Source: Bugula neritina (Eukaryota; Animalia; Bryozoa). Taken from it: 13,388 nucleotides of DNA. The notes under the pieces were generated by a model. The model was not told the DNA's origin. It saw only the letters and a program-made list of their open reading frames with translations, and ran no database searches. This document shows, in pieces, positions 1 to 13,388 of the stretch. The first letter of the stretch is position 1. Each line of letters starts with the position of its first letter. The stretch spans positions 1 to 13,388 of the forward strand of contig CAXIUT010000251.1 of NCBI GenBank assembly GCA_964035545.1, written 5' to 3'. Position numbers and translations under genes: made by a program.

Positions 1-1589
1 GTAGGGGATGGTGTACCCTGGTTTGAAGTCTATGTTTTAGATGAAGTACCTTTATTGCAGACTAAGTGGTGGTAAGACTAACCGAAATCTATCAGTTTGA
101 CTATGCCATTGTAGTGCATCATGATGTTATTGGGCTTGATGTCTAGATGTACTATTTTTTATTATTTTAAATATCTTAGTCCTTGGATTATCGAGTAGAT
201 GTATGTGAGTTTAGTTTGCAGGGAAATGGTTAGCTTGTTGTTGATCATAAATTATTTGAGTGTTTTTGATGGCAAATAGTCCATTAGGATTCCCTATGGA
301 AAGGGGTTGTTGGGATTTAGTGGAATATAGTATTTGGGTACAAATATGTCTTTTTTATTTTTTATTTGTTTCAATATCTATAGCTAGTGACTGATTCTAT
401 CTTTGACTAGTGATGGATTTTGATGATTAGATTTGAACTAGCTTTAAATGACGAGTTACTGTTTAAGAACTAGTTATTTATGGATTAATTTTTATTAATT
501 GAATATTTATTTTTTGTATTGACGGGTTTGTACTTTTTAGTTTTAAGAAAAGAGTGGCCAAAAATGAGCACTTGTTTTGTATATATTAGAGAATCCACCT
601 TAGTTTACCTTTACTATCTATCTATGCTTTGTATTTTTGACATATATATAATTTACAATAGACAATGTTTCTATATTCGAGTTCTTTATATCTTTTGGCA
701 ATACTATTTGATTCTTTACAGTTGCTATATCGTTCATCGATAGTTCTTCTTTTCTTTTATCTTTTATGCTGTGTTTTTCATATAATACTATACTTTTCGA
801 CATATCTTCATTTATTTTTATTTTTCTGCTATAGATATCTCTTAAAATCTATATTTGTTTTGATTTATAGAGTTATACTTCTTTCAATCCTTAGCTATTT
901 GCTCCTAAATAACTCTAAGCAGACATAACTTAGTGATATTTATGGATTTGACACATTTTCGATGAAGAAAGATGATCATGATTATGTTAATTTTTAAGTA
1001 TTTTGAGTAGAAGCCAACTGATTTCGCCTAAATTGGGTTTTAATATTGAATTCATCATTTGAGTTACTTTTTTTTGTTGATAAAAAAACTTTTAATTGAA
1101 AGATTTGTAGTCGCTATTCACATAGTGAGGAAATGTTATTTTTATTTTACCTTGTTTGGCATCAACACCTTTGTAAAAATATTTAGTACCTATTCTAAGA
1201 TGAGGAAAAGGATCTCTTGATTGATAAGAGATAATATAATAGTAGAGCTGAGGTATCTTCTTTTTGTTCTCTATACTATAATAGCAGTAATCTGGTGTCA
1301 GTAACTAGAGTGAAAGCAAAAGATATTTATTGTCTTTGGCTATTTTACCTACCAATAATCCTCTTAGTTTGCTTACTAGCTATATTTCATTCAATATATG
1401 TATTCTTTAATGTTGGCCTTCTGAAATATCACTAAAACTCTGTTTTTTAGCCACATCAGACTTGTCAACTGGGTCTTTTGTTTGATTCTATTGAGGTCTA
1501 TCTGCTAATTTAGTATCGGATTAGCTTTAGTTTTATTGAGAGGCTATTGTGAAGTAGAATTAGTCTTCGGGAAGAATAAAAATGCTCAT
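1..1589 (-). CDS. Ser/Thr-type protein kinase with a long N-terminal region; 3'-partial (runs off the window); one 20-nt intron at 30-49
   Basis: ATG at 1589(-) opens a TGA-free frame to the window edge (* = TAA/TAG). Motifs in order: VN*GGFSNIY (Gly loop), LVLK, SH*L*IL (alphaC), ILMDYL, IVHLDIKPNNIM (catalytic loop), VKLIDFG*S and, after intron removal, KPGYTIPY (P+1 loop). Confidence 0.93.
30..49 (-). other. 20-nt spliceosomal intron GTACTTCATCTAAAACATAG
   Basis: GT..AG ends. Removal gives the activation-segment-like GYTIPY. Same size class as the other introns in the window. Confidence 0.75.
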
Positions 1590-1751
1590 CTTGATATTTG
1601 TCTATATAATATAAGAAATATAAGATATTAAATTTAATTTGACTTATACTAGTTATTACTTTTATAATAAGAGTGAAATAAGTAGTTTTGTCTAGAGGTA
1701 TAGATTATTGTTTTTGTAATTGTTGCATTTTAATAATTAAATAAAAATAAG
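1590..1751. promoter_or_regulatory. Short AT-rich divergent intergenic region (putative bidirectional promoter)
   Basis: 162 nt between the kinase ATG (1589, -) and the ATG at 1752 (+), markedly more AT-rich than the flanking CDS. Function inferred from position only. Confidence 0.5.
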
Positions 1752-2294
1752 ATGTCTGTCATAGAAGTAATATCAGAGCAAGACAGTCTTTTATAAAATT
1801 CTCAAATGAATATGTTTATAAAAAGAAAACCTTAACTAACCTTTAAAAAACCAAGTGTGGCATTATTTCCTTCATATCTTAATCAACCGGCTCATTCTAA
1901 AACTAATTTAAGACAAACTTTTAAAACTATATAAACGAGATCTAGCACGAATTTTAAAAGACAAACATTCCATTCAAGAAATATATCAAGGTATAGTTCT
2001 CTTAGTAATCCGTAGTATCAAAAAAAATCAAAAATTACTAACAATCAATCTAAAATAAAAAAGAAGTAAACAGAAAGTCAGCTGAATATCATATCTACTA
2101 TGCATAGGATCAATCAAAAGCAGGTATTAAGTCATTTAAAACAAGATAAGATTCCTTTTTCAATGACTAGAAGACAAAGTTTAGGAAGTTTGAGGTCAAA
2201 AGTAGAAGAATAGGTTCAAAAGAAGTTCAATCGTAAATATCAAATCAAATCTCCCTTTGCACCTGACTACCTAGAGTCAGACTATCTAGAATGA
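1752..2294 (+). CDS. Hypothetical protein, 180 aa, basic and Ser/Lys/Arg-rich
   Basis: ATG 1752 to TGA 2292-2294 with no internal TGA (MSVIEVISEQDSLL...APDYLESDYLE). Bounded by AT-rich spacers. No recognised domain. Confidence 0.75.
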
Positions 2295-2454
2295 TATGCA
2301 TCATATATATATTCTATTAGATATTAATATAAAGTAGAACAAATTGACTTTTCCAACCAAAATGACCAATATAAACATGAATGCTAATGATGATTTAAAG
2401 ATAGAGTTATAAATTTGTATTTGAGGAGTATATATATATGGTTATTGATATTTT

Positions 2455-3519
2455 ATGATATAAAATAGCAGTTGTATGAGTTATTTTCAACGCCACCTTA
2501 GAACCTATCAAGTCGCTGATCAAAAAACCAATCAAGCACTACAACAATTCCCTCTAAAAAATAAAAAACAGAACAATCAACGAGTTAAAACAGAACACAG
2601 CATTCAGAACAATAGACCATCTAGAAAAAAAGACTAGAATAATTATATTATGCCAACAAAACGTAAAGGATACTAGGATCTTCAGAAAGGCTAATAGGTG
2701 AGACAGCTATTCAAGCCTCCTGTGAGATTTGCAACCTAGGGTCCTACTTAATGCTAGATGTGTGATGAGCCGATGAAGGCATTTTTCGTTGAGGCTGACA
2801 ATTCGGTGTAGTAGGTGTTGAATAGTTCAATGACTCATTTTTAAAACTATTTCAATAGGAGATAGTAATCTCATAGCGATCTTATTCAGCAGAATAGTAA
2901 TTTGAGGGAATCGATCGAAGAGTTGATGTCTATACTGAGGAATAAATTGGATAAAGCACTAAAAAAGCAGGAGAAGTAGCTGAACGGAGTGATGTCTGAC
3001 TACATTCAGCTGATAACTAAGTTGTTAGCTGATAAGTAGGAGTTGACAGGGTCGGTTGAACGCTTATAGATGGAATTATCATAGAATAAGAATAAAATAA
3101 ATGCTTATGAGAAGGAGATATTGGCTATGAAGGACAGGTAGAACAATCTCGATGCAATGGAGAGGGATCTTCTGAATAAGATATAGAAATTAGAGTAGAG
3201 ATGGCCTGAATAGAGGGTATAGAATAAGAAGATCCAAAGTTTATGTAATATGCTCTAGCGGTCATAGAGATAGAAAGGCATGCTAGAGTAGGCTTATAAA
3301 AGATTGCAGGGATCTGATGATAAATCTAAGCAACTAGAGTAGGTCTATGTAGCAAAGTTGAATGATTTAGAGAGAGAGCACGAGGAGTAGTTTATTGAAT
3401 TTGAGAAGGCAGTGAATGAGACGATATCTAAAAAGGATGAGACGATAGCTCGATTGAATAGGATAATCGAAGGTCGGTTCGGGAGGGAAAGTCAAGCAGA
3501 GTCGGTTTTCGAGGAGTGA
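2455..3519 (+). CDS. Coiled-coil protein, ~354 aa, possibly CEP131/AZI1-like
   Basis: ATG 2455 (alternative 2476) to TGA 3517-3519 is open throughout. The C-terminal half is heptad- and E/K-rich. YIQLITKLLADK*EL and VNETISKKDETIARL recall CEP131 segments from memory, not from a search. Confidence 0.8.
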
Positions 3520-3595
3520 TCTTTAATATGATAGTCATTAATATCATATTATGATTAGGATGTTCTTATGATGAAGAATGAATGGGTTGATTGGA

Positions 3596-4532
3596 TCATT
3601 GGTTGTTTTGGTATCCGTAGTCGTAGAAGGGGTAGTTTAAGAAAGGATAGAAGTTGGGAATATATGATATTCCTTCTTACTTTACTACTGATTTTATGCC
3701 ATTCTATCCTTACGACTGCTACACCTCTTATGATGCCTAGACCTCCTGCTCAAATGACTGCTCATTTATGTGTTCTGACTATTAGTATATTTGTTCTACT
3801 TTGACTTGTGAGTAGCTTTCTTCGAGGTGGTCTTCGTTCTTTACTGGTGTTTTTAATGATTTTTATTTATTTTGGAAGGCTTGGAAGATGGTGGATTTGA
3901 TCTTGTTGATGAGATAAATACTTTTTGATAGAGGGCGGGCTGCTCTTGGACTCTACTGGTGAGATATATTCTATCTATTTTGAATTTCATGGTGAATATA
4001 TTTTTTTTGATTTATTGTTTTAAAAATTTGAATTCTAAGGTGAATAACAAGTTACAATTTTCCGATTTATACATGTCATTTAAAAACCTGGGAGATAATT
4101 TTCCTATTTCGTAGTTATAAGACCTATCGGTACTATCCAGACAGTTCAAAACGAAACGCACGTAGTTTCTTAGAGTACCGTAGAATCTATTTTTGATTTT
4201 GTTTTGTGTTCTAACTCTCACTAAAGATTACCTTCCGATGCATTTTTGAATCACACACCACTTGGTGCCTATTTGTTCATAGACTTCATAGAGTTTAGAG
4301 AGCTAGGACTACTCCCAGTCGTTGTTTTTGAGTTGTGGGTCGAGGAAGTTGATCCATTTTTATCTACATTCGATTTAGGTCCTCAGAAAGCCTTGTCTTT
4401 TAAAAGCAGCTGCTATTTGTTTCCATTTTTTTGAGGTATGCAGAGGGTAGAGACGGGAGAGAAGCTATAATTACTTAGTTTCATAATAAATACCTAAGAA
4501 GACCACTTTTATTTTTTTTTGGTTATTTGCAT
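3596..4532 (-). CDS. Myb-domain (two-repeat) DNA-binding protein, ~284 aa; introns 4474-4493, 4211-4231, 3902-3921 and probably 4035-4055
   Basis: Spliced translation KWSS**L*LL...KKWKQIA...RT*IECR*KWINFLDP...DWE*S*L...GTKWCVI...GRTQNKIKNRFY shows the Myb Trp spacing. It is followed by an acidic region and a Tyr/Pro-rich tail ending in TGA at 3598-3596. Confidence 0.92.
3902..3921 (-). other. 20-nt intron GTATTTATCTCATCAACAAG
   Basis: GT..AG ends. Links the upstream frame (..PALYQK) to the acidic C-terminal frame (IKSTIFQAF..). Confidence 0.65.
4035..4055 (-). other. Probable 21-nt intron GTAACTTGTTATTCACCTTAG
   Basis: GTAA..TAG of the local size class, but frame-neutral and outside a conserved domain, so the sequence does not require it. 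Confidence 0.5.
4211..4231 (-). other. 21-nt intron GTAATCTTTAGTGAGAGTTAG
   Basis: Removal restores the Myb motif GRTxNxIKNRF. Confidence 0.85.
4474..4493 (-). other. 20-nt intron GTATTTATTATGAAACTAAG
   Basis: Needed to join ATG 4532 to the Myb frame. Gives WSSEELELL under UAR=Glu. Confidence 0.8.
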
Positions 4533-4808
4533 AACAAATAATTATAAATCTAATTATTTTATACCCTCACTAATATCAAACCGACGAAATTAAGTCATCC
4601 AGTTGGCACTATCTGTCAGTTTTTTGTTATAATGGTCTTATGCTAAAATGGTGTTTATCAAATATTTTAATGGTGAAACAATTATTTCAATATATTATTT
4701 TAATATAAATTTTATATCAGAGCTAGTTTATCTGTTATCATAACTAGCAACAGACATGGTCTGATTTAGACTTCTATTAATTATTTTTTAAAAGTTAATA
4801 ATTTTATT
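4533..4808. promoter_or_regulatory. AT-rich divergent intergenic region between the Myb and MORN genes
   Basis: 276 nt between ATG 4532(-) and ATG 4809(+). Function inferred from position only. Confidence 0.45.
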
Positions 4809-6352
4809 ATGAGTAAATCCCATCAATATAAAGGGGTTGGGGTTGGGGTTGGGGTTGGGGTTGGGGTTGGGGTTGGGGTTGGGGTTGGGGTTGGGCTGTT
4901 CAAATCCCCACAATCTCATCTGTTCAAATCCCAACAATCTCATCTGTTCAAATCCCAACAATCTCATCTGTTCAAATCCCAACAATCCCATCTATTTCGT
5001 TCCTCACATCCTCTTAAGCAATTAAATCCTTAGCAGTCTTCTGATTGTTCAAAGATAATGGAGCAGTAGAAGCTGGACGCATAGATATTGCGGATAAAGT
5101 CATTATAGTTATCGAGGAAGTTGAACGAGATATGGAATATAGGAGGAGAGGAGTTGATATAGTTTTTTAGCGGATTTAGTTCTATTACAGAGATAGTGGA
5201 CTACAGTCAGCTGAAGAAAATGGATGACATGAAATTGGTAAGAACTGATAATAAGATATACCTTGGACAAATCAAATACAAACAAAAAAGTGGTAAAGGT
5301 AGCCTCTCACAATATGTAGGTATTACTGTCTATAAAGATGGTAAAATATACGAGGGAGAATACCATAAAAATTAGAAACAAGGAACGGGATGCTAAATAT
5401 ACCCCAATGGAAACCTATATATCGGACACTATCATCAGAATAAAAAACATGGAAAGGGAACCTTCTTTTGGTTTAGTCACTGTGACCAGCCGTCGTCTAA
5501 ACATCACTCCCCTAAAGTATAGCAGTACTAGGGGATGTGGTGGGGAGGGCTCCCCGATGGATAAGGTCAGCACTAAAAGTCTAATGGTAGTACTCCATCT
5601 ATCCAGGTGACTTTTATTTGGGACATTTTAAAAATGGACTTAAACACGGTGAAGGAGTCTAGTACTACTCCAATGGAGATAAATATGCAGGGCATTTCAC
5701 CAATGGGCTGCCTGAAGGATTCGGATAGTACTTATGGGCCGATAAATCGTTCTATAGAGGTGATTTTAAACAAGGCTATAGGAACGGCTACGGATTGTGG
5801 AATGATGCTAAGGAGGAGTAAAACTATCAAGGACACTACATGCTTGATAGAAAACATGGATACGGAGTATATAACTGGAACAATGGATATATTTATAAAG
5901 GAAATTTCACAGAAGATCAGAGAAGTGGAGAGGGACAACTCTTCTATCAGGAACAGTTGGTCTACAATGGTTTCTGGCTTAACGGATAGAAGTGTTAGTA
6001 ATAGGATTATACTAAAGAGAAATATTCTAAAACAGCTAATACTCTAGCTAGTAGAATGGAGCTGATGAGCAGATAGGGCAGAAGTCGATAGAAGTTGACT
6101 TCCAATAAAAGAAAAAGGAAGAGAAAAGATGATTCTTTTGAGGTGAACTTCAAACATAAGAAGTAATAGGCTCATAACTAGCACTGCTATGCTTGCAAGA
6201 TAAAACATAATAACAAGTCGATGGGAAAGACTCTACCTTTGATTTCTACTCATAATAAATGCACTCATTGTAGAAATTGCAAATCTCAGAGCAAAAGATC
6301 TCGAGAGCCTTATTGCCATTCAAGTCCAAAAAAAAACTATGATTGCAAATGA
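4809..6352 (+). CDS. MORN-repeat protein, ~500 aa, with N-terminal (GV)10G and LFKSQQSH repeats and a Cys/His-rich tail; introns 5299-5319 and 5587-5606
   Basis: TGA-free from ATG 4809 to TGA 6350-6352 after splicing. About 9-10 YxGx..GxG MORN units, e.g. YIGHYHQNKKHGKG, YLGHFKNGLKHGEG, YQGHYMLDRKHGYG. An alternative in-frame ATG lies at 5058. Confidence 0.92.
4833..4895 (+). repeat. Interstitial telomeric tract (GGGGTT)10GGG
   Basis: 63 nt of perfect repeat, with the same unit and strand as the terminal telomere. Confidence 0.97.
4896..4991 (+). repeat. Coding minisatellite, 24-nt unit x4 (CTGTTCAAATCCCAACAATCTCAT; LFKSQQSH)
   Basis: Units start at 4896, 4920, 4944 and 4968. A diverged in-register copy occupies 4809-4832. 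Confidence 0.95.
5299..5319 (+). other. 21-nt intron GTAGCCTCTCACAATATGTAG
   Basis: Removal restores a 23-aa MORN unit (YLGQIKYKQKSGKGITVYKDGKI). Confidence 0.8.
5587..5606 (+). other. 20-nt intron GTAGTACTCCATCTATCCAG
   Basis: Required frame change between MORN units (SNG|DFYLG). Confidence 0.9.
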
Positions 6353-6380
6353 TGTATTAATAATCTTACACCCATCTATT

Positions 6381-6480
6381 ACTATTCCATGCTATTAGTT
6401 ATTATTCCATGCTATTAGTTATTATTCCAACTATGAGGTCATTATTCCATGATATTCGTTATTATTCCATGATATTCGTT
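6381..6480. repeat. Intergenic/3' minisatellite, 20-nt unit x5 (ATTATTCCATG(C/A)TATT(A/C)GTT)
   Basis: Five in-register units, the third diverged. Begins 29 nt after the MORN stop. Confidence 0.9.
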
Positions 6481-6568
6481 ATTGACTTTATGTCCTAGTT
6501 ATCTCTATGGTTACTGTTTAATTATTCATTGATGCTAATTGATTTGATAAAGGTTAGTAATATATAAG

Positions 6569-8931
6569 ATGATTCAAAAGTCTAAGCTTTCTATATCTGT
6601 GCAATAGGCATAGTTTTCAAAAGATTACCAGTACATGATATCAGCCCAATTCCAGCACCAAAAGGTACATCCTTTACTAGAAAGAAACAAACAGATATGT
6701 CAGCGCTAGCACGTTCTCCTATCTTCACCAACAACACTCTCATTTTCGACCTGCCCTCCTCCCATACTCTCCAGGGATTTGTCACAGTACTATTCATCAT
6801 ATTTTAGTTTATAGGACATATGTTGCTCCCTGGAGATGAATAGAATAATAAACTAAATACGAGAATATTGGGAGAATGTAGTCTAGACCTTTCTCCATTT
6901 GCTTTACAGCCGAGTTAGATTTACAATTTGCCTATTAGACAGCAACTTAAGTTGGCTAAAAATAAAGATGGAAAAGAAGTTACTGTGGGCAGATTCATTG
7001 CTTCCATCAAAATAGTCAAAGAAGATTAACTACCCCAATACATAGAAAATCTTTAAATCAAAAAAATATAAAAAAACTAGTTTTTTTCAGAACTACCTCC
7101 TTTTGACCCAAAGTTTGCTTTCGATTGGAGAATTCGTTTAGATATCAGAGAGGCAATCAACGTTCCTCCAACCGATGGGGTCCAGGCCCAGGTTAAAATT
7201 TAGGCGGGATGGACAGAATACAAAGATTCAGTTCCTTAATAGGGCAGACTATTCAGTTCTTATATTATGTCTGGACCCCATCCATAGTGGAATCAGACTA
7301 TGCTGATAACTAATCCTGCGCATATATCATAGCCAAGAGGGTATTTGATGTTGTCGATGAAGGACCAGAATAACTTATAAGATTTATATCGGGTGTACTT
7401 TCCAGTGTAGTCGATGGGTCAATTCGTTCCCTACAACTTGAAACTGGTCAGATAGAGTGAACCTGCCTTACTGTAGTTTTATATATCTATTGTTCTTGAG
7501 GCGCCAGTAGATATGAGAGACCAGTTGGTTGATGTTGTTGTAAAGGACGTTACATTCTAGCCTTCTTTTACTCCTTTTAAACAAATTAATTTGGTCACTA
7601 CTATTCAAAAATAAATATAACCCAAACTTAATTTTTTGAAATTCGATCCCAGATAAGATCAAATAGATCGAGTGCTTTAGTTCGACCAGGCTGAGTAGTT
7701 CAACTTCATGATGTCTGCTACTTTAAGAGTACCTCCCATAAAAAGCAGTAACTATAAGGCAGCAGCAGTCATAACTCTAAGTGAGAGTCTTCTTCGCAGG
7801 AAGATAGATATTTATTTAGTTGCAAAGACCACTAAAGGACAATACTAGGTGATGGGCTTATCGGAAGGAGTTCAAAGAGATTTGGTGAGTTTGATTATCT
7901 AAAAGAAGAAGAAAATGCTATTTCTTCAAATCAGAAATAGCCCTAATACTAAATTTGGTTCATGTCAAATATAGATCATCCCATTCGATAGATAGTTAGA
8001 TTCGATTGCTTCTTCGAGGGTGTCACAGAGAGGATAGTAAACAGCTAGCTAGAAGTTGATGAAGGAGTTGAACTTCAATACAAACGAATCTATGTTGAAA
8101 CATGTGGCTCAAAATAACGACATTATCGCTAGAATACTAAAAGAACTAGATGACAAATCAGAGTCACTCAAACAGGCAGCATCAGAGATAAGCAGCCTTC
8201 GAGGAAGAGTTAAATTGATTCAAAATTAGAATGGCATTCTTCGACAGCAGGCTTTGAGATAGGAAGACTAGTTGGTGAATTTGGTGCAAAGAGAAGTGTA
8301 GAATATGAGTGGTAGAGATCTCAAGGAAAAAATAGTCAAAATATCACAGCTGTATAAAATATAGCGAAGTAAAAATAGATAGTTGGATAGAACTGTCAAG
8401 ACTATGTAGCCTCAAATCAGTAACACGATGCAGTTGAATTCAGTTATAGCTTCTCAAAAAAATAACTTGCAGATATTGGGAGAGAAGATAGAGAGGATGA
8501 CTAAATAGCACTAGAGGATCAATGTTTATAAAGATACAATAAGAAAGCAAGAGAAAGTGATAGTTAAACTGTAGGGAGTGATGAAGTAGGGGATGGAGTA
8601 GGTGAGAAATGCAAGAAAGCTAAAAATATAAAATTAGGAGCTTAAGAAACGAGGAGGAGGAGGGAGAGGAGTGAGTCGAGGACAGTAGAAGTAATAGATC
8701 TAGCGACTACAGGGGATAATAGCTCAGTTGCAATCGGGAGGGAAAGGATCTAAAGCAGGGAACGGATAAAGTAACTATGAACTGGAATTCAAGTTACATC
8801 AGGCTCAAACTAGAATAGCATCTCTTGAAGAATAATTACAATAAAATTCTAAAGCATATGCTCGAGAACTAGCCATGTTGAGAATGAAAGTGGCAGAAAA
8901 AGAAGCTGTCATGGATGGATATAGAATTTGA
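6569..8931 (+). CDS. CCDC33: C2-domain and coiled-coil protein, CCDC33-like, ~780 aa; intron 6665-6684
   Basis: Open frame to TGA 8929-8931. C2-like segments LSISVQ*A*F, SPIFTNN, WRIRLDIREAINVP and HP*WNQT. The C-terminal coiled coil has TIRKQEKVIVKL* and RIASLEE*LQ*NSKAYARE, recalling CCDC33. The 5' end is less certain, because an intronless frame is also open from ATG 6490/6532. Confidence 0.8.
6665..6684 (+). other. 20-nt intron GTACATCCTTTACTAGAAAG
   Basis: Joins the C2 first-strand exon (ATG 6569) to the main frame. The nearer TAG ending at 6680 would give the wrong frame. Confidence 0.7.
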
Positions 8932-8940
8932 TCACCTGAT

Positions 8941-9106
8941 TCTTTATTTATCCTTTTCTGTCCTATCTTTATTTAGCCTTTTCTGTCCTATCTTTATTTA
9001 TCCTTTTATGCCTATTCATTATTTAGCCTTTTATGCCTATTCATTATTTAGCCTTTATGTCCTATCTTTATTTATCCTTTTATGTCCTATTCATTATTTA
9101 TCCTTT
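8941..9106. repeat. Intergenic/3' minisatellite, ~25-nt pyrimidine-rich unit x6.6 (TCTTTATTTA(T/G)CCTTTT(C/A)TGTCCTA)
   Basis: Units at 8941, 8966, 8991, 9016, 9041, 9065 and 9091. Begins 10 nt after the stop codon. Confidence 0.92.
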
Positions 9107-9197
9107 GATAGAGCTATCTTGTTATTTTGACTTAATACTTTTGACTGATTTTGACTTGTTAATTAATCTAAAGGATGTGAGTAATATAATAATTTGA

Positions 9198-9563
9198 ATG
9201 CATAGTTCATAAAAACTTCAACTAATAATATCGATTTCATTTCTTCTGCTTTTTATTCCTTGTATCTATCTCATAATCCTTGACCCTTCTCGTTCTCTAA
9301 CTCTAGCTCTTCTTGTCAAGAATATGTCTATCATTGCTATCGAAATAACCTTTTTGATTTTACTGGCTATCTACTACTCAATACGGCAGTACAAAAGCAA
9401 AGTTCCAACAGCAGTGGTTTACTCTTATTGCTATAATGGTAAATTTTAGAAGAAGGGTTAGATGAGCAGTGGATATGTAGATTTTAGAAAGGAAATTAAG
9501 CAGGAACATTAAGAAATAGCTAGAGAAATAGCTTGTAAATAAAAAATGATCTTTGATGATTGA
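9198..9563 (+). CDS. Small membrane protein, 121 aa, two predicted TM helices
   Basis: ATG 9198 to TGA 9561-9563. Hydrophobic stretches LIISISFLLLFIPCIYLIIL and IIAIEITFLILLAIYYSI, followed by a charged tail. Confidence 0.72.
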
Positions 9564-9794
9564 TTCGATATTACTATTGTGACTAAATCAAATAAAATAC
9601 AATTATTTCATGACAAACTTACTATCGATTTATCAACTACTTTTTAATCTTTAGCCTTTAAAGCATTCAATTGATTGTCAAACACAAACAGGGATGCCAA
9701 TATGCTAGTTTTAGTCTATTAGACTGAGACAATATGATCAATATTGATAAGAGGTTATTTCTGTTAAAGCAATAAGTTATAAAGTTAATTATCG

Positions 9795-11599
9795 ATGAAT
9801 AGAAAGAACCAAGATAAATAAAAGAACGAAAAAGACAAAGAAGAAGGAGTAGTACAACCAGTCATGCCAAAATTTATTCCCAACTGGACTCAACCTATCC
9901 GTTTCGATCGAATTCAAGTGAACGTCTCAGGTATACTTCCAACTATCCAGACTGTTAGTACGAAGTAGTGAGTAAAGTTTCGAAAGGACTTAAATGGAAA
10001 GTTAAAAGTGACCAAAATAATCCAGAGTGGGATTTATGGTGGACCGACTGGCAAATAACACCAGAAGTTTTGATGAAAATGGAACATCATCAGAAGATAA
10101 ACCATTTTCCAGGCATGTACACTCTTGCTAGAAAAAACCTTTTAGCAAAAAACTTGATGCGAATGCGGAAGAAAAGTGCATAATAATACAACTTCTTTCC
10201 TTTGACTTGGAATTTGCCTGGAGATTATCAATAGTTCAAGGCATACTACGACAATAAACCCAAAGGAAAGGCACGGACGTACATAGTAAAACCAGAATCA
10301 CTATCCCAAGGAAAAGGTATCTTTTTGACCAGAAAGTTATAAGATATCAATCCAGGCCAACACTGCGTAGTTCAAAGGTATTTAAGCCGACCCTATTTGA
10401 TTGATGGTTTGAAGTTTGATTTGAGGATTTATGTCTTGGTGGGAGGAGTGGACCCTTTGCGCATCTATATCTTTCGAGACGGGTTGGCTCGTTTTGCAAC
10501 TGAGTAGTACGTGGTTCCTAACAAGTAAAATATGGAAGACGTGTGTATGCATTTGACTAATTATGCCATTAACAAAGAAAGTGATAAGTTTGTCTTTAAC
10601 CAGGATTAAAAAGATATGAATGTTGGACATAAAAGAAATCTATAAGCTGTTTTCAAAATAATGGGCGAAAAAGGAGTAGATATTCCTCAGTTGTGGACTA
10701 GTATACAAGATCTCATTGTTAAAACTCTTATCAGCGGATACGCGCATCTTAAATTTCAATACAGATCTGCCCAACCTGAAAATTACCGAGGCGACATGTG
10801 TTTTTAAATTCTTGGATTCGATATCATAATAACTGAAGAAATTCAGCCGATTATGCTATAGATCAACTATACTCCTTCTTTTTCTACTGATACTCCTTTG
10901 GACTGGAACATAAAATCCAATTTGATCAGGGATTCGTTGATTTTGATGGGCATTAACAAAGAATTTAAAGAAGGGACAGTGAAATTAAGGAAATAATGTC
11001 GAGATATGCGTATGATGACGGGTAAAAAGAACAAGTTAACATTCTAGTAAAAATAGCAAAGAAGAATAGATAGTGTTAAATAAAAAGATTAATATATAAG
11101 CAATCATTTGGGTGGATTTACTCAAATATATCCCTTAGCAGCTGACAATCCTAAACAGATTGTTTATGAAAAGTTGCTCAAGATGTAGGGAGAGCCATAA
11201 CCTCAAAAAACAAAGAAGTTGTAGCCTCAAATGATAGTTAGAAGAAATACTTAGAAGTTTACTAAGCTGCCTCTTCTGTCAAAAGATTCTCACGAGTCGA
11301 AAAACTAATTAAAAAAGGTAATAGGTTCTAACAATTATATTGATAGGACTAAGATAATGATGAAGGGGTCATAGGATGAAAATATTATTGTTGAGTAGAG
11401 TTCTAAAACTCAGCCTGGAAGAGATTTTTCACAACGGCTGATAAAGAAGTTACGGGTTCGAGATATTTCTTCGAATGGCAAAAAGAAGTCACTGCATGTG
11501 AGGGAGACTCTGGTGCCTAAAACTATCCAATTCCAAGGTACCAAATTTGATGGACTCAACTAGGCATATCGCTTTAACTTCAATGGAACTAATTAGTGA
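9795..11599 (+). CDS. TTLL6: Tubulin polyglutamylase, TTLL6/13-type (tubulin-tyrosine ligase-like), ~594 aa; intron 9931-9950
   Basis: Motifs [85 protein letters not shown] and HLGGF.IYP. The Gln in SQGKG is the residue associated with elongase-type TTLLs. Stop TGA 11597-11599. Confidence 0.95.
9931..9950 (+). other. 20-nt intron GTATACTTCCAACTATCCAG
   Basis: Required to join ATG 9795 to the TTL frame (VNVSD|C*YEVV). Confidence 0.88.
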
Positions 11600-11630
11600 T
11601 CTTTTCATAATAACTTTGTTCATTCGTTAG

Positions 11631-11770
11631 TGATATGAGGTGATATGAGGTGAAATGAGTTGATATAAGATCATATGAGGTGATATAAGATCATATAAGG
11701 TGATATGAGGTGATATAAGATCATATGAGGTGATATGAGGTGATATGATCTCATATGAGGTGATATGAGG
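11631..11770. repeat. Intergenic/3' 10-nt tandem repeat x14 (TGATATGAGG, with variants TGATATAAGA and TCATATGAGG)
   Basis: Fourteen in-register decamers with no indels, starting 32 nt after the TTLL stop. Confidence 0.95.
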
Positions 11771-11852
11771 TGATTTTATATATTTTCCTTATTATTTAAT
11801 AGATGATGCCTGAGTTATATTTTGACTATTTTTGGATGTTAATATAAATAAT

Positions 11853-12788
11853 ATGGTGGGGAAGGGGGTATAATTTAAGCAGTAGTTATTTAAGACAATG
11901 AGTAATCGAACTCGATCAAATCCCAACGAGATATATTTAAAGTTGAATTCTAACCTTTCTCAGTTACAGACTCAAGTGAGGCATTTTAATTTTACTCAAT
12001 AGACGATAATAGATAAGATAAACCTTCCATCGAATAGAAAGCCAACTATCCAACAACGTTTAAAAACTATGACAGAACCTAAATATCAACAGCTGCTGTT
12101 GACTTGTGAACTTCCGAATCATCCTAAAAATAGTAATAGTAAAAATAAATGGACAAATAATCAAAGTAGTCCTAAAATACATCATCTAAAAGATAAAATA
12201 GATCATCTAAAAGATAAAATAGATCATCTAAAAGGTAAAATAGATCATCAAAAAGATAAAAATAATGTTTTCAATTTTAGATCACATCCCCTAAACAACA
12301 AATAAATGAATAAAAAATATCTATTTACCCCTAATAGCAAAAATAACCTCAACCTCAAAAACAAAGTATTGACAACAACTGCGCAACAACAATAGCCATG
12401 GGAATTTGGATAATAACCTGCCAAAGAAGAACATACGATTGATTATGTGCAGGTGGTTGAGTTGGCGAAGAGACAAGAGGTGAGAGTGGATGGAATGGGT
12501 GAGAAGAGACAAGAGGTGAGAGTGGACGGAATGGGTGAGAAGAGACAAGAAGTGAGAGTGGACGGAATGGGTAAGAAGAGTAGACTGAAGAGAAAGCTTA
12601 AGTAGTTATAGTTTTAGTGGTAGAAAACTGATGTTTTATGTTAGAAGATAAGTAGTTATTTGGGCAATTTTTAATCAAGCTAGAAGAGAAGTCAAACTCC
12701 TAGCAATAAAATAAATCAAGTTATCGATAAAATAAAAAAACATAGAACTTTGTCTACTCCACTCACCAAATATAAACAACAGTATTGA
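11853..12788 (+). CDS. Hypothetical protein, ~311 aa, with two internal peptide repeats
   Basis: ATG 11853 (alternative 11898) to TGA 12786-12788 with no internal TGA. Both internal repeats have unit lengths that are multiples of 3. Confidence 0.78.
12174..12257 (+). repeat. Coding minisatellite, 21 nt x4 (KIDHLKD heptad)
   Basis: AAAATAGATCATCTAAAAGAT units at 12174, 12195, 12216 and 12237. Confidence 0.93.
12468..12575 (+). repeat. Coding minisatellite, 36 nt x3 (KRQEVRVDGMGE)
   Basis: AAGAGACAAGAGGTGAGAGTGGA(T/C)GGAATGGGTGAG units at 12468, 12504 and 12540. Confidence 0.93.
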
Positions 12789-12933
12789 TCTATTCTTATT
12801 TATCATCAAATATACAATAGATAAATAGAGTTAGAGTGGTTTTAGCTAGTTAAAATCTAAATACAAAGAATATTCAGCAAATACTGATGGCTATATTGTG
12901 AAATGGTTCAGAATAATAAGTTGTTAATACTTA

Positions 12934-13239
12934 TCAGTTTCCTTTTTCTCCATTCAAAGTTTCAAGATCGTTTCCTTCTTCTTCGAACAATTCCATGCAC
13001 TTGGTCTGCATGCACATCACTATTCCTTGCATTTTTATGCCATTTGCGCTCTGCAAGCACAACACAAAGTCATCTTCTGTCTCACAAAACTGATACGCTT
13101 TCTCACAGGCAGTATCTTTCTGGCAATCACTAACAGTAGAAGCACACAAATCCAGACAGACCTATCTCCTATGTTGAGATGGAAACTCAGGTTGAGTGTA
13201 GCAGAGAGCTATTAGCAGTAAAATCAATAGAACTTTCAT
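12934..13239 (-). CDS. Small secreted cysteine-rich protein, 101 aa
   Basis: ATG 13239(-) gives the signal peptide MKVLLILLLIALC. The mature part has C-x3-C-x6-C-x5-C-x6-C-x8-C-x14-C-x4-C and an acidic tail. One in-frame TAG; TGA at 12936-12934. Confidence 0.88.
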
Positions 13240-13299
13240 TTTTTGAATTATTTATTATATGCTAACAAATAAAATAATGCACTTGTAGTTTATATCGAT

Positions 13300-13388
13300 T
13301 TGGGGTTGGGGTTGGGGTTGGGGTTGGGGTTGGGGTTGGGGTTGGGGTTGGGGTTGGGGTTGGGGTTGGGGTTGGGGTTGGGGTTGGG
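13300..13388 (+). repeat. Terminal telomere, (TTGGGG)14 + TTGGG
   Basis: Perfect T2G4 repeat running 5'->3' to the end of the sequence. This is the Tetrahymena-type ciliate telomere unit. Confidence 0.97.

Follow-up and report, generated by a model that had tools for sequence, protein, structure and literature searches.

An in-frame telomeric tract at the start of a ciliate MORN-repeat gene is very likely an assembly artefact and may mark an alternative telomere-addition site

True interstitial telomeric sequences (ITSs) include the internal C4A2 blocks in which Tel-1 elements of the Tetrahymena germline end, and the ITSs of vertebrates. Alternative telomere addition is an established phenomenon as well, known from Oxytricha and Blepharisma. 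In Oxytricha, internal telomere-addition sites occur in about a quarter of chromosomes (PMC3558436), and contigs with multiple telomeres have been read as the result of alternative fragmentation or as telomere-like repeats (PMC3558436, PMC6937825). In the Oxytricha long-read assembly, telomeric sequence embedded in corrected reads was regarded as an artefact and filtered out (PMC6937825). In Blepharisma, alternative telomere-addition sites (ATASs) number in the tens of thousands, the majority of them known from a single read (10.1101/2021.12.14.471607; also PMC13685798). The sites of these two ciliates are used in a minority of molecules, and the resulting nested isoforms are merged by assemblers.

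The locus considered here lies in a window of 13,388 nt (the whole stretch of DNA that was analysed) from a lineage that, when set against Blepharisma and Oxytricha, is characterized by G4T2 telomeres and by the use of UAA and UAG as sense codons, probably for Glu. A telomeric tract, (GGGGTT)10GGG, occupies positions 4833–4895 of the + strand (63 nt; 10.5 copies according to TRF, 100% perfect). Upstream of it is an ATG at 4809, the start of an open frame whose first eight codons (4809–4832, +; MSKSHQYK) constitute a diverged copy of a 24-nt unit. Downstream of it is the minisatellite built of that unit (4896–4993, +; 4.1 copies according to TRF), which encodes LFKS(Q/P)QSH in the MORN frame. 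Provided that TGA is the only stop codon, no stop interrupts the frame that begins at ATG 4809, either in the tract or on the way into the MORN repeats. The original prediction had described this tract within the MORN ORF, and its letters and counts are correct. It had also pointed to the match of 4809–4832 to the 24-nt unit at 16 of 24 positions, which we were able to confirm: outside the array, at least 16 matches are reached at only 2 of ~26,700 positions (both strands), and by this sequence measure the likeness is well above chance.

The left edge of the tract has the form of a telomere junction. At 4832..4833 (+ strand), ...CAATATAAA is followed by GGGGTT, and the G-strand repeats adjoin ...ATATAAA without a gap, in the orientation seen where a chromosome ends on its right side. 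The terminal telomere that closes the window on the right (TTGGGG, 14.8 copies, 13300–13388, +) has the same polarity. We therefore regard 4832..4833 as a candidate alternative telomere-addition site. As at the sites of Blepharisma and Oxytricha, the repeats directly abut chromosomal sequence inside a longer molecule and show end polarity. Unlike those sites, this one is read from a consensus tract, and its position is not intergenic but within a reading frame, 24 nt from the ATG. Taken as it stands in the window, the locus also resembles true ITSs, in that telomere repeats have unique DNA on both sides.

Minisatellites are unusually plentiful at this locus, and some of them lie within open frames. 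Five further short-unit tandem arrays are present in the 13 kb (6379–6483, 8939–9106, 11630–11774, 12173–12261 and 12467–12580), the units being 20, 25/75, 10, 21 and 36 nt long.

The MORN-repeat gene (4809–6349, +) has two candidate starts, ATG 4809 and ATG 5058. PF02493 scores over its curated cut-off on the piece 5822–5986, and the codon score in the MORN frame is clearly positive only from ~5026 onward. A putative GT..AG intron of 20 nt (5587–5606, +) was read from the sequence; its removal restores the MORN frame, linking ...EKSNG with DFYLGHFKNG. On the other side of an AT-rich spacer of ~250 nt, and divergent from the MORN gene, is a Myb-like gene (3547–4566, −), an open frame with the W..I/..RW.N.LDP/..W spacing of Myb repeats. 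Matches to PF13921 in this gene are weak and under the cut-off, and they fall on two separate stop-free pieces. The Myb-like gene contains 16 in-frame TAA/TAG codons, several of which occupy Glu positions of the Myb repeats; one example is CR*KW, whose Myb-repeat counterpart we take to be CRERW. The positions of these codons fit a predicted code in which UAA and UAG specify Glu and TGA is the sole stop. Elsewhere in the window, a tubulin-tyrosine-ligase-like gene is found at 9728–11596 (PF03133, E = 3e-22 on one 54-aa piece).

Evidence from reads was obtained in the form of Logan contigs (k = 31), from which rare variants are lost and which are unable to bridge a hexamer tract of 63 nt. At the junction these contigs come from one study only (runs X1 and X2, with the same organism label), and the contigs of two other runs, X3 and X4, leave the left flank uncovered. 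The contig comparison covered 5,001 nt, with positions 4825–4902 masked. In both X1 (record 4, 242 nt) and X2 (record 11, 256 nt, depth 80.7), a contig matches 4643–4824 with zero mismatches and reads through 4832. Past the left flank, the X1 contig extends for 60 nt and the X2 contig for 74 nt, into minisatellite units without telomere repeats. Extensions of this size are too short to accommodate 4825–4832, the 63-nt tract and a matched flank, and hence the contigs are without the tract. The 3' part of each is minisatellite sequence, which aligns at 4906–4956 (to ~4970 for X2) with mismatches, among them T>C at 4940. No branch is seen at 4832 in the contigs of either run, and the depth of X2 is virtually the same on the left (118.2) and on the right (117.9) of the site.

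The X2 contig at 4643–4898 has a depth of 80.7, compared to ~118 nearby. We considered whether this drop reflects a second form and rejected the idea, because the whole AT-rich contig is affected and no second contig exists there. Contigs restart at 4958 (X2, X3), 30 nt ahead of the next unique variant; the contig breaks at 4958–4965, together with a 54-nt cycle contig, are consistent with a k = 31 graph of the minisatellite array.

The contigs provided two further observations on the region to the left. The left end of the window is without a telomere, and an X1 contig of 11,159 nt, which ends at 4555, reaches ~6.6 kb past it. This indicates that the window represents the right-hand portion of a longer molecule, one of at least ~20 kb with several genes rather than one. 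Within 4526–4672, two versions of the sequence are present, with 10 differences (4556–4642) and depths of ~72 and 26 in X2 and of 4 and 2 in X1. The major version is that of the window, and the two could be alleles or near-identical copies.

The register of the contigs shows how their sequence relates to that of the window. The offsets of the two aligned contig pieces differ by exactly 72, or 3 × 24. A variant unit (of the CCCAT type, resembling the window's fourth unit) begins at co-linear position 4848, in register with 4896, and register arithmetic places the beginning of a further full unit at co-linear 4872. By the same register, 15 nt lie between 4832 and 4848, their letters being inside the masked stretch. 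The length of the tract agrees with this arrangement, as 63 = 15 + 2 × 24; the chance that 63 mod 24 equals 15 is 1 in 24. These data indicate that the tract stands in place of array sequence, and has not been inserted into the array. One caveat here is that the equal length of the tract and the replaced array holds modulo 24, the number of units being hidden by the repeat cycle. The X2 contig stops at co-linear 4898, 30 nt beyond the last unique letter, which should be the expected behaviour of a k = 31 unitig entering a cycle of perfect units. A plain join of 4832 to 4896 is excluded, since such an excision would align perfectly at 4903–4947, whereas the contig aligns further along and with mismatches. 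We judge that the minisatellite array in the reads extends further left, under the tract. It had been proposed that the tract splits one continuous array at a unit boundary, but in the contigs of two runs 4832 is followed by 15 nt and then by units.

One contig stands apart from this picture. An X1 contig that starts matching at 4960 has nine unmatched letters, AACCCCCAT, in front, and these were not reconciled with the other contigs. They may represent a variant unit or the hidden beginning of the real array after 4832. The notion that AACCCCCAT is part of the real 4833–4847, should that stretch be CCCCCATAATCTCAT, was set aside, as it misfits both the mismatch count and the unbroken X2 contig.

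We also looked for the junctions themselves. In a run search, X1 and X2 contained 0.94 of 116 31-mers sampled from 4300–5500, and the ~7 missing words are close to the count that the absence of both junctions would give (an expected 3 + 3 sampled words crossing the two tract junctions). None of the runs listed in this search is recorded as RNA. For the right junction (4895/4896), a 61-nt query (4866–4926) gave 0 of 2 sampled 31-mers in any run, X1 and X2 included. All but one of the 31-mers of the query cross the junction. This is a weak negative result, as the sampled words are few and the index might handle repeat-rich words differently. None of the read-derived contigs (k = 31) carries the right junction, and the left junction at 4832 was not seen in the X1 and X2 Logan contigs, from which rare variants are dropped. 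When JGI metagenome contigs were scanned for exact patterns from the left flank and from the minisatellite, either scan gave 0 matches. A protein search with words from residues 30–74 of a 74-aa table-11 ORF across the tract gave no match, and an exact-protein look-up of a 31-aa ORF in 4648–4740 found none on record. The possibility that the tract length was set by the k-mer size of a de Bruijn assembler (63 nt fits k = 59 or 61) was rejected, because right-junction words are missing from these same reads at k = 31.

Based on these data, the in-frame telomere tract is very likely an artefact of assembly. For a real telomere-addition site behind it the case is less firm: the site is known from the assembly, and on balance we lean towards its existence at 4832. 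The two parts are joined in a reading that we consider probable, namely that the tract is an artefact which overwrote part of the array and which came from a minor isoform telomere-ended at 4832/4833. The real locus would then run from the Myb/MORN intergenic region to ATG 4809, through ~15 nt of a degenerate array start, and on to full 24-nt units. A telomere-ended sequence (a read or the contig of a short isoform) ending at 4832 may have been overlapped with a longer molecule during assembly. If its 63-nt telomeric tail was retained when the layout or consensus was made, and the sequence that came next was attached in co-linear fashion, 63 nt of the array would have been overwritten. A block of that size is beyond what polishing with short reads can mend. 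Under such a scenario, no short read is expected in which GGGGTTGGG is directly joined to CTGTTCAAATCC.

As to where the tail came from, the most likely source is a minor isoform of the chromosome whose end was formed by de novo telomere addition at 4832/4833. Such an addition site would fall shortly beyond the sequence upstream of the Myb-like gene and 24 nt inside the MORN frame. If a chromosome stopped at 4832, it would retain the Myb-like gene with all of its upstream region, and of the MORN frame only the first 8 codons would be left. The exact right-end polarity of the left junction and its sensible position favour a real minor isoform as the source. Since depth is the same to the left and to the right and words of the left junction are missing, use of the site in these samples, if it is real, must be rare. 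The original prediction had offered, as one option, that the tract marks an alternative fragmentation site. This idea stays plausible: there is a gapless G-strand junction with the polarity of a right end, and other molecules read through the position, although no telomere junction was seen in the X1 and X2 contigs.

The main alternative to a real minor isoform as the source of the tract is a chimeric or otherwise artefactual read, arising through ligation, amplification or a failure of read splitting, in which case no biological telomere addition occurred at 4832. Left-junction words also seem absent from the X1 and X2 contigs and depth is equal on both sides, as such a source would have it, and embedded telomeric sequences are known from chimeric corrected reads (PMC6937825). 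However, the usual end-to-end chimeras consist of G-strand followed by C-strand, not of G-strand followed by unique sequence, and a spurious read does not readily account for a junction that has no gap, has exactly the right-end polarity, and lies immediately beyond the upstream region of a gene, a plausible place for a chromosome to end. Moreover, at least one ciliate is known in which addition sites are typically rare and seen in single reads (10.1101/2021.12.14.471607). We thus regard a chimeric read as an unlikely source. More drastic would be a chimera at the level of the contig, with the right end of one chromosome (1–4895) joined to an unrelated, telomere-less fragment (4896–13388). The right-end polarity of the tract is in line with this, as is the right junction, which does not have the form of a natural telomere junction. 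Yet in a short-read contig the left flank is directly followed by units of this same minisatellite, 4809–4832 is itself a diverged unit, the register fits co-linearity, and the X2 depths of the two sides agree. Both flanks belong to one locus, and so the earlier view that this is not a random join of two chromosomes stands; a chimeric contig is extremely improbable.

The remaining alternative takes the tract at face value, as a real interstitial sequence: telomerase healed a break at 4832, the healed end was ligated back to the downstream array in frame, and the tract is translated as (Gly-Val)10. Besides the derivation of both flanks from one locus, the open frame across the tract speaks for this reading. 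We consider frame preservation to be weak evidence, because any run of whole hexamers stays in frame and, with TGA as the sole stop, most frames are open anyway. The contigs are unable to prove the absence of a minority form; what they do show is a tract-less form that passes through 4832 unbranched, at full local depth, in two samples. The sampled words of the right junction are absent, and since the 15 nt and the units are replaced, this reading needs a deletion that matches the tract length modulo 24. True ITSs are carried by single molecules, whereas here the right junction is absent from the contigs and the tract-less form is dominant. The contigs contain no molecule that spans both flanks, a finding which the original prediction had named as counting against it (k = 31 contigs are in any case unable to span the tract), and they provide no case of an insertion next to tract-less alleles. 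Collectively, these data argue against a real interstitial tract, which we hold to be very improbable, and the same grade applies to a restricted version in which a small fraction of macronuclear copies bears a telomerase-added tract rejoined in frame that the assembly happened to capture. With the tract-less form dominant, no contig carrying the right junction, and array sequence replaced, the proposal of a healed break re-ligated within an exon, giving telomerase-templated Gly-Val coding sequence, is not supported.

An assembly artefact sourced from a minor isoform, the reading that we prefer, can be compared with the embedded artefacts of Oxytricha. Here, too, the tract lies within a contig and no independent molecule supports it. 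The Oxytricha artefacts are chimeras of different chromosomes, whereas in the present case the flanks are from one locus and a stretch of matching length has been overwritten. This difference points to an error of layout or consensus at the end of a nested isoform.

These results bear on how the locus should be read. The tract is not to be taken as a coding insertion, a gene fusion or a healed break. It probably conceals real sequence of about its own length and thereby corrupts the model of the MORN protein N-terminus. Nothing in this analysis supports telomerase-templated protein-coding sequence, and there is probably no telomerase-templated Gly-Val coding sequence at this locus. Were a rejoined tract nonetheless present in some copies, it would point to the re-ligation of healed breaks in this ciliate. 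If, as we favour, the tract derives from real molecules, internal tracts of this kind would provide a cheap map of telomere-addition sites and nested isoforms in a little-studied ciliate lineage.
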